A DNA stretch of 63,577 nt, counting the filler, from Octopus bimaculoides (lineage: Eukaryota), in the NCBI RefSeq assembly GCF_001194135.2. It is 9 parts of 8 records of this genome, joined end to end, with 100 filler letters (N's around TTAATTAATTAA, not from the genome) between each part and the next. Parts side by side here need not be neighbours in the genome. Positions count along the whole stretch, not along the records: positions 29,118 to 32,600 come from NC_069009.1; 8 more parts are not named here. One strand, written 5' to 3'. The position numbers and the translations under genes are program-made. The notes below the pieces were generated by a model, which did not search any database, was not told the origin of the DNA, and saw only the letters and a list, made by a program, of their open reading frames with translations. Below are positions 29,018-32,700 of this stretch, in pieces. Within the stretch, counting starts at the first letter, position 1. Every line of letters starts with the position of its first letter.

Positions 29018-29119
29018 NNNNNNNNNNNNNNNNNNNNNNNNNNNNNNNNNNNNNNNNNNNNTTAATTAATTAANNNNNNNNNNNNNNNNNNNNNNNNNNN
29101 NNNNNNNNNNNNNNNNNCA

Positions 29120-29438
29120 ATTCAGTATCCTTTGATTCTCATATTTCTGCCAGCTTTGACTCTTGTATTTTCTGTGACTCCGTTAACTGGAGAATCAACA
29201 TGTAAAGAAGTCATCTTCAAGGAAATCACGAAATCAAAATGCTTGATTGATCAGATGAAAATACATAAAAACACATCTTCTACTGAAGACTGTGCACTTC
29301 GGTGTATTTTACACCATAAGTGCCATTATTTTAGCTACTGTAATGGCTCATGTTATATGCACCGATTGCTTTACGAAAAAGAAATTAAAAAAGATTATGA
29401 TTGCAACTGTTCATCGTATATTTTGCTTTCTGCAAACA
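29120..29438 (+). CDS. Exon 1 (5'-incomplete) of a secreted PAN/apple-like protein: signal peptide plus Cys-rich domain
   Basis: Frame is open from the gap edge: IQYPLILIFLPALTLVFSVTPLTG (hydrophobic), then C-x12-C..EDCALRCILHHKCHYFSYCNGSCYMH, a PAN/apple-like C-x3-C-x5-C-xx-F-x-Y-x-x-x-x-C pattern. Donor A|GTAAGT at 29439 (phase 1). The ATG is probably in the gap. Confidence 0.85.
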
Positions 29439-29826
29439 GTAAGTAAATCACAATTTTCTTGTCTTCTGCTTTTGTAATTTTTAGCATCATTGACCCTATG
29501 TCACTCAAGGTCACCAGCCGCAATACACACGCATACACTTCCACGCTCTCACATACACACGCACGCGCACCTTCATTTTGGGATCACCACTACTTTATTA
29601 TCTCCCCTTTTTCCTAGCTCTCTTGTCTGACCACCTCCGTCCAGCCAGCCGCCATGATCGACTGCTAGCCACTAAAGCTTTTTTTTTTAATTCTCTATCT
29701 GTTTATTTTCTCGTGTTCCTTTCTGTTGAAACCCTATTTATGTAACCCTTTCCTGCCGTTTAAGGGTTAACATCTTGTTTGTACACTTATATCTAAATTA
29801 TTGATTACTATTTAATTCTGATACAG

Positions 29827-29918
29827 ATAAAAACTGGCAGAGAGCATTTGAGATGACCAAAGATTCATTTAAAAGAAGCCCTATTTATTTATACTGGGAC
29901 AAATTGCCTATTGTAAAG
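29827..29918 (+). CDS. Exon 2
   Basis: Acceptor ATACAG|, donor AAG|GTAAGG, 92 bp, phase 1 in and phase 0 out. Encodes NKNWQRAFEMTKDSFKRSPIYLYWDKLPIVK. Confidence 0.85.
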
Positions 29919-30029
29919 GTAAGGAATTTTTGAAATTTCAAAATGAATCTCATTTAATAAATAATCTACATATTTGTCAATCCGATATCTTTTGGAGCAT
30001 TTGGCTTTTTACATTTGTCTGTGACATGT

Positions 30030-30242
30030 GTAAGGATTTTCGAGCGAGATCGTTGCCAGTGCCCTTGGACTGGCTCTTGTGCGGGTGGCACACAAAATAC
30101 ACCATTTTGAGCGTGGCCGTTGCCAGTACCGCTTGACTGGCCTTCGTGCAGGTGACATGTAAAAGCACCCACTACACTCTCAGAGTGGTTGGCGTTAGGA
30201 AGGGCATCCAGCTGTAGAAACTCTGCCAAATCAGATTGAGTT
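30030..30242 (+). mobile_element. SINE-like family C (TGGTTGGCGTTAGGAAGGGCATCCAGCTGTAGAAAC)
   Basis: The same core recurs at 47270-47535(+, CpG-decayed), 55155-55186(-) and 61965-62120(+). Confidence 0.75.
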
Positions 30243-30504
30243 GGGATTGATTCTTGCTGCTTTTGTCTTTTCTTTTTGTTCTGATTTTGTCAGGGTTTTC
30301 TACTTCTCATAGATGCAACAAATCTTTTACAAAGACTCCGAAAGCATAACTTATTAGTTATTTGTCCGATTTTTTTGTCTTATTAGTCACCCGTGTTTTT
30401 CTCCTAAATTCGTACTCTTTCTCTCCCTCTATCTTAATTTTGCACTTCTTTTAATTGTTATTTTGTATTTCCTTCTCTCACTTTCGCTCCTTCTCTCTCT
30501 CTCT

Positions 30505-30878
30505 CTATCTCTATCTATCTATCTATCTATCTACCTTCTCTAATCTTTCTCTCTTTTGCTCTGAGACTCTCTTACTCTCTAACTCTCACTCTTCCTCCAC
30601 TTTTCCCCTCTGTCTCCTTTTCTCCCTCCTACTCCCTCCCTGTATCACATCATAACCTCTTTTCTCTTTATACCACTCTATCTTCTCTCACTTTCTCTCT
30701 CTCTCTCTATCTATCTACCTTCTCTAACCTTTCTCTCTTTTGCTCTGAGACTCTCTTACTCTCTAACTCTCACTCTTCCTCCACTTTTCCCCTCTGTCTC
30801 CTTCTCTCCCTCCTACTCCCTCCCTGTATCACATCATAACCTCTTTTCTCTTTATACCACTCTATCTTCAATCACTTT
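30505..30878. repeat. Tandem duplication of a ~184-bp pyrimidine-rich unit
   Basis: CTACCTTCTCTAA...ATACCACTCTATCTTC starts at 30531 and 30715, nearly identical. Confidence 0.92.
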
Positions 30879-30897
30879 CTTCGATTTCTATTTGCAG

Positions 30898-31046
30898 GTC
30901 AGATTTCGGTTGAGTAGAAAACAAGATAAACGTATATTCATTTTCAACGGTACAGGGACAAATTCTACATCGTGGTTCCAGAAAGACAAAGTCATTACAA
31001 TTCTATGGAACGGCTGGGATCCACAGAACTTAACTTTCAATGAGAA
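30898..31046 (+). CDS. Exon 3
   Basis: Acceptor TTTGCAG|, 149 bp, phase 0 in and phase 2 out (AA|GTATAT). Encodes VRFRLSRKQDKRIFIFNGTGTNSTSWFQKDKVITILWNGWDPQNLTFNE; the reading frame stops 30 nt into the intron. Confidence 0.85.
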
Positions 31047-31098
31047 GTATATATTATCTTTTTGCTCGTAATTAACATCTTTAATTATTTTGTAATAG

Positions 31099-31133
31099 GT
31101 CTTTTGAACACTTTTACAATCAATATTTAAGAG
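31099..31133 (+). CDS. Candidate exon 4a (35-bp mini-exon)
   Basis: TAATAG| and GAG|GTAAGT. The only open frame is the one required (K-SFEHFYNQYLR), phase 2 in and phase 1 out. The upstream intron is only 52 nt. Confidence 0.45.
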
Positions 31134-31182
31134 GTAAGTTTACAGATATACTTTGTATCTCATTGTTGTATCATATTATAGT

Positions 31183-31553
31183 GGAGGCGCAATGGCCCAG
31201 TGGTTACGGCAGCGGTCTCGCAGTCATAGGATTGCGGTTTCGATTCCCAGACCAGGCGTTGTGCGTGTTTATTGAGCGAAAACACCTGAAAAGCTCCACG
31301 AGGCTCCAGCAGAGGATGGTGGCGAACCCTGCTGTACTCTTCCACCACAACTTTTTCTCACTCTTACTTCCTGTTTCTGTTGTGCCTGTAATTCAAAGGG
31401 TCAGCCTGAATATCCCCCGAGAACTACGTTAAGGGTACACGTGTCTGTGGAGTGCTCAGCCACTTGCACGTTAATTTCACGAGCAGGCTGTTCCGTTGAT
31501 CGGATCAACTGGAACCCTCGTCGTCATAAGCGACGGACTGCCAACAAACAACA
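31183..31553 (+). mobile_element. Full-length tRNA-derived SINE (family D) in an intron
   Basis: A box TGGCCCAGTGG (31193-31203), B box GGTTTCGATTCC (31236-31247), ~370-bp body and (AAC)-like tail. A decayed fragment lies at ~48870-48960. Confidence 0.85.
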
Positions 31554-31714
31554 ATCATGAATACAAAACCGGACATGAAACATTCACTAATATCAGAGAC
31601 GAAATGATAACCTCATCGATTTAATTAAACAGAATTGATTGTAAATACAATTCGTAAAAGTGTTATTTATAATGATTTTTATTAAATTTATCAATTTTAA
31701 TATATCAGTTTCAG

Positions 31715-31821
31715 TCACCCGTATTTTAGAATCGAGGGTCCTTCTCAGACTACGATAGAAGCCAAAAGAGAAATCGGAAATAATGAAAAGTATGATATTT
31801 CCGTGAAAAGTTTACTGAGGA
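31715..31821 (+). CDS. Candidate exon 4b
   Basis: Acceptor TTTCAG| (or 31709), donor A|GTAAGT at 31822, phase 2 in and phase 1 out. Encodes HPYFRIEGPSQTTIEAKREIGNNEKYDISVKSLLR. Confidence 0.6.
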
Positions 31822-32187
31822 GTAAGTAATTAAGTCGTCTTTATTTGAATGCAAATGATTGTATGAGTATGAGTGTGTGTGTCCGTGTGTGCACACGCAC
31901 ATGTGGTTTTTAAGAAGCATTTTCTCATACATGTAAATGTTATAAATATTTTTTTCAAGCCAAAACAGTGCAAGTTTTAACAAGTCAACATCTGAACCGC
32001 ACGCAGCCGATTGGATGCTATAGCAATGCAAAACAACCCTTCATAAACACACACTAGGGAGTGGGGAAATCAGCCGTCAACACCTTCTTTACGTTAATGT
32101 GTGTATGCATGCATGTATGATCATTGAGAAATTTAGAGTGAACTTCATAAATCATTAACACATTTTTCTTTTCATTTTTTTTTTCAG

Positions 32188-32237
32188 ATTTAAGCATCAG
32201 TTTCGAAACTCTGTACATCACTGTTCTTTTCAATTAG
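32188..32237 (+). CDS. Candidate terminal coding exon
   Basis: Strong pyrimidine tract CATTTTTCTTTTCATTTTTTTTTTCAG|, phase 1 entry, encodes (N/D)LSISFETLYITVLFN* with TAG ending at 32237. Confidence 0.6.
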
Positions 32238-32700
32238 AATATACATTATTGGAAAAACTGCTTTTTTTTTTTTACATCCACCCATACATACATACATACA
32301 TACATACATACATACATACATGATGGCCGTCCACTCGTGACCGAGGAAGACCATTGCCAACCTTCAGGAACATTGCGCGCTCTAGGACTAACTTATATTT
32401 TGCATTTGCAGCTCCGTTGGTGGCTAATGAGCCCTGCTCTTGACAAGCATACATACATACATACATACATGCATTCATACACACACACACACACACATAC
32501 ATACATACATACATACATACATACATAAATAAATACATAGGCTTGTCAAAACTGGAAGGGAGAAAGCTAATTCGAAGACTACAGATCCAATCCATCACTG
32601 NNNNNNNNNNNNNNNNNNNNNNNNNNNNNNNNNNNNNNNNNNNNTTAATTAATTAANNNNNNNNNNNNNNNNNNNNNNNNNNNNNNNNNNNNNNNNNNNN

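Follow-up and report, generated by a model that had tools for sequence, protein, structure and literature searches.

Positions 29118-32600 of the window, the whole 63,577-nucleotide stretch of Octopus bimaculoides DNA (filler included) that was analysed, raise the question of whether they hold a gene and, if so, what kind of protein it specifies. An earlier inspection of the bare DNA (hereafter the sequence-only reading) had proposed here a hidden five-exon gene for a secreted glycoprotein with a PAN/apple-like domain and a second, unassigned domain. This piece is 100% identical to chromosome CM046629.1:1181627-1185109 of assembly GCA_001194135.2, where assembly gaps flank it (1433 N upstream, 3171 N downstream); its eukaryotic DNA is rich in AT and contains microsatellites and interspersed repeats. 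It carries a real, spliced protein-coding gene, LOC106879016, which is not hidden, as it is already annotated in RefSeq as an uncharacterised protein. We propose, with a probability of about 0.8 for the reading as a whole, that LOC106879016 is a member of an Octopus gene family and encodes a PAN plus beta-sandwich protein that would act as a secreted, glycosylated binder.

Exons 29120-29438, 29827-29918 and 30898-31046 form one open frame through canonical GT-AG junctions in phases 1, 0 and 2, and the exon at 32188-32237 terminates with TAG. The reading frame is open across all five exons, every splice site is canonical and the motifs that are invariant in the family are intact. When cephalopod paralogues were sought exon by exon with tblastn, exons 1-4 each matched independent Octopus paralogue proteins, with best E-values of about 1e-45, 1e-18, 1e-31 and 1e-21. 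Used as a query in a protein search, the spliced product recovered RefSeq P0001, 'uncharacterized protein LOC106879016 [Octopus bimaculoides]' (195 aa), from which it differed only at exon 4. All junctions of the RefSeq model match the chain, including an acceptor at 31709. The four exons for which the sequence-only reading had given coordinates were thus confirmed.

For exon 4, two options (4a or 4b) had been left without coordinates, and neither fits. In-phase GT-AG candidates were found at 31099-31133 and 31730-31821; RefSeq and the family give 31709-31821, 21 nt longer than the longer option. At this acceptor RefSeq reads ...TFNE/NFSHPYFRIEGPSQ... (a slash marks the junction) and the family keeps ...TFNE/NFSHPYFRIE. 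Candidate 31099-31133 ('4a') has no homologue, lies inside intron 3 and is ruled out by the RefSeq model and by family conservation; candidate 31730-31821 is 21 nt too short and would delete the family-conserved (N)FSxPYFxI strand. The gene is therefore laid out as follows, exons being numbered from the first one present in the piece.

29118..29438, plus strand: second coding exon (exon 1 of the sequence-only reading), 5' end cut by the assembly gap; tblastn E to 1e-45
29129..29191, plus strand: hydrophobic leader PLILIFLPALTLVFSVTPLTG, predicted signal-peptide h/c region; Kyte-Doolittle 2.14, paralogue and orthologue N-termini, AlphaFold2 (AF2)
29210..29428, plus strand: divergent PAN/apple domain, residues ~31-103 of 240, 8 family-conserved Cys; Pfam, hidden Markov model (HMM) searches of PDB, AF2/Foldseek, hhalign
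29439..29826, plus strand: intron 1, GT...AG
29827..29918, plus strand: exon 2, start of the C-terminal domain (WQRAFEMTKDSFKRSPIYLYWDKLPIVK), end phase 0; tblastn, family and orthologue alignments
29919..30897, plus strand: intron 2, with an interspersed repeat (30051-30238) and a CT-rich tandem duplication (30500-30867)
30898..31046, plus strand: exon 3, most conserved core of the domain (VRFRL...IFIFNGTGTNSTSWFQKDKV...LTFNE), end phase 2; tblastn, family alignment, HMM search, hhalign
31047..31708, plus strand: intron 3, with a tRNA-like repeat of the short interspersed element (SINE) type at ~31173-31376
31709..31821, plus strand: exon 4 with corrected acceptor, (N)FSHPYFRIEGPSQTTIEAKREIGNNEKYDISVKSLLR, end phase 1; RefSeq P0001, tblastn, in-frame FSYPYFSIKG in O. 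vulgaris, beta-strand in the model
31822..32187, plus strand: intron 4
32188..32237, plus strand: coding part of the last exon, (N)LSISFETLYITVLFN and TAG; final beta-strand of the sandwich, fitting the family C-terminus ..EALVISVLFK

The exon at 29118-29438 codes for (P)IQYPLILIFLPALTLVFSVTPLTG..., which takes in the core of the signal peptide and the entire PAN/apple domain; its donor, CA/GTAAGT in phase 1, is conserved in the orthologue alignment.

The number of coding exons has to be revised. Paralogue proteins begin MNLKGMET(S/P)IQY..., and the genomic sequence of the O. sinensis and O. vulgaris orthologues and of the neighbouring O. bimaculoides paralogue reads ...TTTTTCAG/GAATGGAAACACCAATTCAA; in paralogues and orthologues, an acceptor ...TTTTTCAG/GAATGGAAACACCA precedes METP.... 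The MNLK residues and the first base of the Gly codon must therefore come from an upstream mini-exon, which gives the family six coding exons, and LOC106879016 probably has six as well, five of them present in the piece. In the window copy the mini-exon, the acceptor and 8 codons, (G)METP among them, fall in the 1433-N gap; the piece opens with CA, two bases that complete the Pro codon of METP. The gap should contain an acceptor ...CAG/GAATGGAAAC... and, upstream of it, a mini-exon whose end is ATGAATTTAAAAG. Because the 5' end lies in the gap, the RefSeq model starts at an internal Met (MKIHKNTSS); 45 residues encoded in the window, with the leader and the first strand of the PAN domain, are missing from it. 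It is identical to the window from the 3' part of exon 1 through exon 5, and neither domains nor a function are annotated on it. The assembly gap has truncated this model N-terminally; a leader and a full PAN domain belong to the true product.

Reading through the exon 3 donor (31047-31073) yields ...NEKYILSFCS*, and the O. sinensis paralogue model P0005 ends in a nearly identical read-through, ...NEKYILSLLNS. Such an ending may be an annotation artefact common to both or else a conserved short isoform that arises by intron retention and is devoid of the last third of the domain.

Domains of the predicted product

The piece encodes 240 residues of a protein of about 250 aa. Its N-terminal PLILIFLPALTLVFSVTPL reaches a Kyte-Doolittle value of 2.14, and no other segment exceeds 0.8; the hydrophobic N-terminus noticed earlier is thus borne out. 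In the model, the hydrophobic YITVLFN at the C-terminus forms the last beta-strand and is not an anchor. At the leader, the AF2 model of a paralogue shows a short helix with a predicted local distance difference test score (pLDDT) below 50. Eight N-x-S/T sequons were counted (NTS, NGS, NCS, NGT, NST, NLT, NFS and NLS), the last two in addition to the six named in the sequence-only reading, which had claimed at least six; shuffled sequences contain 2.46 +/- 1.39 (P=6e-4). Two of them, NGT and NST, sit inside a loop that is nearly invariant in the family, NGTGTNSTSWF. The prediction of a secreted glycoprotein is supported by this leader, by the sequon excess, by the eight family-conserved Cys and by the exclusively extracellular partner domains found in relatives. 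As shown or modelled below, the protein consists of a predicted cleavable hydrophobic leader, a divergent PAN/apple domain with as many as four disulfides and a beta-sandwich of 131 residues without Cys.

Several lines of evidence identify the N-terminal domain, in which eight Cys are conserved across the family. PAN_1 was matched by 12 of 23 family members (E<=1, best E 1.1e-4), and when the family profile was run against PDB sequences all nine matches, weak ones (E 0.05-4.5), were apple domains (MIC4, MIC5, prekallikrein, factor XI). The core Cys pattern is present, as the family motif TSSxEDCALRC...C.YFSYC..G.C aligns to the apple domains of MIC4, prekallikrein and factor XI. AF2, run with the family alignment on the paralogue P0002 (65% identical to the window protein), gave a pLDDT of 82.9 and a predicted template modelling score (pTM) of 0.76. 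Residues 42-110 of this model (strands, a helix at 64-73, strands) form a helix-on-sheet module with pLDDT 81-94, which Foldseek matched to factor XI apple 4 with a probability of 0.99 (target-normalised template modelling score, TMt, 0.52; root-mean-square deviation, rmsd, 3.4 Å), and also to the HGF N domain (0.99), SML-2 and MIC4. Finally, hhalign aligned the Octopus N-domains with the PAN regions of P0102, P0045, P0050, P0058, P0078 and others at 86.9% (E 4.2e-6, 40 columns); Pfam shows PAN in three of these relatives, P0045 and P0050 being above the PAN_1 cut-off and P0102 having a precomputed PF00024 match. We therefore accept the N-terminal domain as a divergent PAN/apple domain, an assignment that leans on modelled structure and agrees with the sequence-only reading. 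It shares with the apple domains of known structure (factor XI, prekallikrein, HGF N domain, Toxoplasma MIC4, Sarcocystis SML-2 lectin) the fold, a helix on an antiparallel sheet, and the C-x3-C ... C core, but is only 15-18% identical to them, falls below the Pfam cut-off and has an extra C-x-C pair at the domain end.

The second domain extends from W110 to N240 (~131 aa) and contains no Cys. Neither its Octopus short form nor the long form of its relatives matched any family in Pfam. Modelled alone from the paralogue P0014, it is an all-beta sandwich (pLDDT 91.5, pTM 0.85). Its likeness to an uncharacterised domain of marine invertebrates, proposed in the sequence-only reading, was substantiated by an exhaustive HMM search with the Octopus C-domain profile against 1.84 billion representatives, which returned 70 matches at E<=1e-3. 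The strongest noted are amphioxus multi-repeat proteins (P0032, 4.9e-30; P0033, 9e-19) with ZP, EGF and C-type lectin partner domains, followed by Acanthaster (4e-10) and by bivalves, Pomacea and Ptychodera (1e-5 to 1e-3). The molluscan matches come from Saccostrea, Mytilus, Sinanodonta, Mercenaria, Dreissena and Pomacea, and from the octopod Argonauta. All relatives outside Octopus are named 'uncharacterized'; their domain may correspond to the coral 'uncharacterized skeletal organic matrix protein 5', a name carried by none of the matches that were looked up. Matches of P0060-P0062 to the C-terminal half of the profile were spurious, these being bacterial Ig or cadherin repeat proteins, and DUF7922 was dismissed, as it gave one weak summed match in a four-repeat amphioxus protein and none in other members.

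In these relatives the domain has a long form of ~190 aa with two Cys pairs and the consensus W.LVF...YR..I..W..L.I..VK..LY...F.G.G....WFS..RL..S.W.DL...FSI.G...RRF.I..YGGC..D.GW...C.W...AD..AIF.K. Short and long forms align by hhalign at 98.9% (E 1.7e-17) over a 56-column core, at which the match ends. The window domain lacks the long-form hallmarks, that is both Cys pairs, the RRF.I / GGC..D.GW segment and the ~190 aa length; as it matches the core all the same, it is a reduced variant and not a typical member. These comparisons show that the Octopus beta-sandwich is a shortened, Cys-free derivative of an unnamed ~190-residue, two-disulfide extracellular domain of molluscs, amphioxus, hemichordates and echinoderms. 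The O. bimaculoides cluster LOC106876621-25 keeps a ..SxPW motif and on that account looks intermediate between the two forms.

The long-form domain often stands directly behind a PAN domain, or beside EGF, C-type lectin, Sushi, kringle, TSP1 or ZP modules; LDLa, D8C, F5/8-C, SUEL lectin and ILEI are further partners, and all are extracellular. The PAN-then-domain layout within 240-300 aa recurs in Dreissena (P0045, KAH3750350.1), Mercenaria (P0050, XP_053387289.1), Mytilus trossulus (P0102, LOC134709575), O. bimaculoides (LOC106873068) and Argonauta (P0057, GAB1608503.1). These proteins share with the window protein the domain order, homologous PAN domains and the core F/YR.PI.D.W..L.I.KVK..LY....F.G.G....WFS, whereas their second domain has ~55-60 more residues, the Cys pairs (..C...YR, GGC..D.GW...C.W) and an RRF.I motif, none of which occurs in the window protein. 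A domain spread over many invertebrate phyla, of which the compact Octopus form is confidently modelled, is thus still without a Pfam family. Current knowledge is not overturned by these results: the gene is a new, uncharacterised member of the PAN-domain secreted proteins that also carries this widespread unnamed domain.

The Octopus family

In a set of 5.8 billion proteins, all 29 matches of the family profile came from O. bimaculoides, O. sinensis and O. vulgaris, and all short-form members are from Octopus, in agreement with the lineage-specific gene suggested earlier. The short form is therefore restricted to Octopus, where it comprises dozens of fast-changing paralogues, tandemly clustered and subject to gene birth and death. 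Such paralogues (LOC106867736, LOC106880400 and O. sinensis LOC118761055, some named 'Apple domain-containing protein' in UniProt) are 45-65% identical to the window protein and share with it the exon plan, the leader, the PAN domain with the compact beta-sandwich, the NGTGTNSTSWF loop and the ..ALVISVLFK end; they vary in the PAN surface and in the last third of the C-terminal domain. Further members form clusters, both on this chromosome and on others. An Octopus-only, clustered and fast-evolving family of this composition is a candidate source of lineage-specific secreted recognition or coating proteins.

Three members deserve separate mention. P0021 (UniProt A0A0L8G5H6, 'Apple domain-containing protein') is a head-to-head paralogue on the minus strand, ~5.7 kb upstream of the piece (L001 3778-4128). 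P0003 (O. sinensis LOC118764386) has the C-terminal domain twice in tandem, and P0009 (LOC118761791) has a five-fold SSAND-type (Ser/Ala/Asn/Asp-rich) insert within the PAN domain; the latter two are examples of modular change in the family.

Orthologous loci in O. vulgaris (L003, OX597817.1, 15942-22720) and O. sinensis (L002) are collinear with the window. The O. vulgaris locus retains intact exons 1, 2, 4 and 5, at 76-89% nucleotide identity (85.5-89% for exons 1, 2 and 4); in O. sinensis, exons 1 and 2 alone were recovered within the fetched locus. The ratio of non-synonymous to synonymous divergence (dN/dS, NG86 method) relative to the O. vulgaris orthologue is 0.39 (bootstrap 0.24-0.67). 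Over the exons 29118-29438, 29827-29918, 31709-31821 and 32188-32237 divergence is 0.141, compared with 0.089 in the flanking introns (Fisher P=0.005); codon position 3 diverged by 0.20, and positions 1 and 2 diverged at about the intron rate. Where exon 1 of the window and of O. vulgaris disagree, the adjacent O. bimaculoides paralogue sides with the window 24 times to 6. The excess of exon over intron divergence and this 24:6 ratio suggest local, perhaps exon-biased, gene conversion, accelerated change or decay in the O. vulgaris lineage, or a combination of the two.

Proposed role and alternatives

Known PAN/apple domains bind proteins or galactose-type sugars. We infer a function as an extracellular binding protein: the product would be secreted and glycosylated and would act as a soluble, bivalent binder. 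Like other PAN/apple domains, its variable PAN domain may bind to a ligand, either a carbohydrate or a protein, and a further surface, for binding or self-association, may be provided by the conserved core loop in the second domain. Such a protein could fit a recognition or coating role, for example as a mucus, gland or immune lectin-like protein.

Several observations weigh against this proposal. The ATG and the signal-peptide n-region (MNLKGMETP in relatives) lie outside the piece. Pfam matches of the window protein itself are below gathering, with 16.8-17.1 bits against 27 for PAN_4 (PF14295, E 0.006) and 14.7-15 bits against 21.4 for PAN_1 (PF00024, E 0.02); the two structure models, and with them the PAN fold, were obtained on paralogues (65% and 53% identical) and not on the window protein. 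Compared with PDB by Foldseek, the C-domain model had no significant match, and therefore no ligand can be inferred from structure. A literature search on the loci, the protein accessions, the family and the apple domain in octopus returned nothing. Exon 3, the most conserved part, was not found in the O. vulgaris locus, which is fully sequenced with no N, or in the O. sinensis locus; skipping it shifts the frame, and the O. vulgaris orthologue may therefore be broken there. Lastly, non-synonymous divergence is close to intron divergence, so that constraint on the window copy is not secure.

The alternative that survives best, possible if somewhat unlikely, is that the protein is not a recognition lectin but a structural one, part of mucus, of a sucker or skin coat, of an egg envelope or of some other extracellular matrix, in which the conserved second domain would serve for polymerisation. 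Relatives do carry the long-form domain in large proteins of a matrix type, alongside ZP, EGF, TSP1, Sushi and D8C modules, the glycosylation potential is heavy and the tandem domain of P0003 would suit polymerisation. However, the window product is a small two-domain protein without the low-complexity or repeat regions typical of structural proteins, and the fast variation of the PAN domain and of the C-terminal third, alongside a loop that does not change, looks more like diversified binding.

More speculative, and unlikely in our estimation, is an extension of the binder proposal itself. An ancient metazoan unnamed domain family (Lophotrochozoa and invertebrate deuterostomes), maybe with a fibrinogen-like sheet core, would have been stripped in Octopus to a Cys-free 131-residue module, and genes combining PAN with this module would have expanded into a diversifying, gene-converting repertoire of secreted recognition proteins, by analogy with snail FREPs and amphioxus VCBPs.

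That the C-terminal domain is itself a much reduced fibrinogen-related domain, binding acetylated sugars as ficolins and tachylectin 5A do, is doubtful. Fibrinogen-related domains were the sole recurring family in the Foldseek search of PDB and own all matches with a query-normalised score (TMq) of at least 0.35: L-ficolin (probability 0.91, TMq 0.42), Angptl3 (0.84, TMq 0.45-0.47), and also FGL1, M-ficolin and tachylectin 5A. Yet E was at least 0.07 throughout, with rmsd 7.6-8.6 Å, Fibrinogen_C was not matched in Pfam by short or long forms, HMM searches against PDB sequences gave no fibrinogen-related match, and hhalign of both forms against three fibrinogen-related sequences from the PDB output gave a probability of ~0.1% (0.001). 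The Octopus domain (~131 aa) is ~90 residues shorter, lacks the Cys pairs, the P-subdomain region and its Ca- or acetyl-binding motifs, and has no sequence or profile similarity to these lectin domains; the likeness, seen by Foldseek alone, is a faint one of the beta-sheet core, and we regard the modelled link as a weak lead.

We consider it equally improbable that the window copy is a young pseudogene, a decaying or unexpressed member of the birth-and-death family with an intact-looking frame but no function. The missing exon 3 in both orthologous loci, with the frameshift that its skipping entails, would agree with decay, as would the faster divergence of exons than of introns, codon positions 1 and 2 near the intron rate, and the many family models that are truncated or fused to repeats. 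Against this, the five exons are open with canonical splice sites and intact invariant motifs, the bootstrap upper bound of dN/dS is 0.67, and the agreement of the paralogue with the window (24:6) places most changes on the O. vulgaris side or reflects local gene conversion.

A chance concatenation of open-frame fragments can be dismissed: short in-phase GT-AG exons do arise by chance, as candidate 4a illustrates, but each exon has significant homologues, the same chain is the RefSeq model and two other Octopus genomes have the orthologous exons in collinear order.

Repeats and microsatellites in the piece

In intron 2, a 184-nt CT-rich unit is tandemly duplicated (96% identity) at 30500-30867, ending 30 nt before the exon 3 acceptor; neither this duplication nor exon 3 has an O. 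vulgaris counterpart. The O. sinensis and O. vulgaris loci contain several copies, in both orientations, of each of the interspersed repeats at 31173-31376 and 30051-30238. By eye, the repeat at 31173-31376 opens with a tRNA-like head (GGCCCAGTGGTT...GGTTTCGATTCC); ARAGORN and Rfam scans of the piece called no tRNA, this repeat included. The 3' flank contains (CATA)n microsatellites at 32283-32321 and 32448-32539. On these lie the only Rfam matches of the piece, to mir-297 (46 bits versus 90) and sno_ZL1, both far below gathering, and a 108-aa low-complexity open reading frame on the minus strand; all of these are artefacts.

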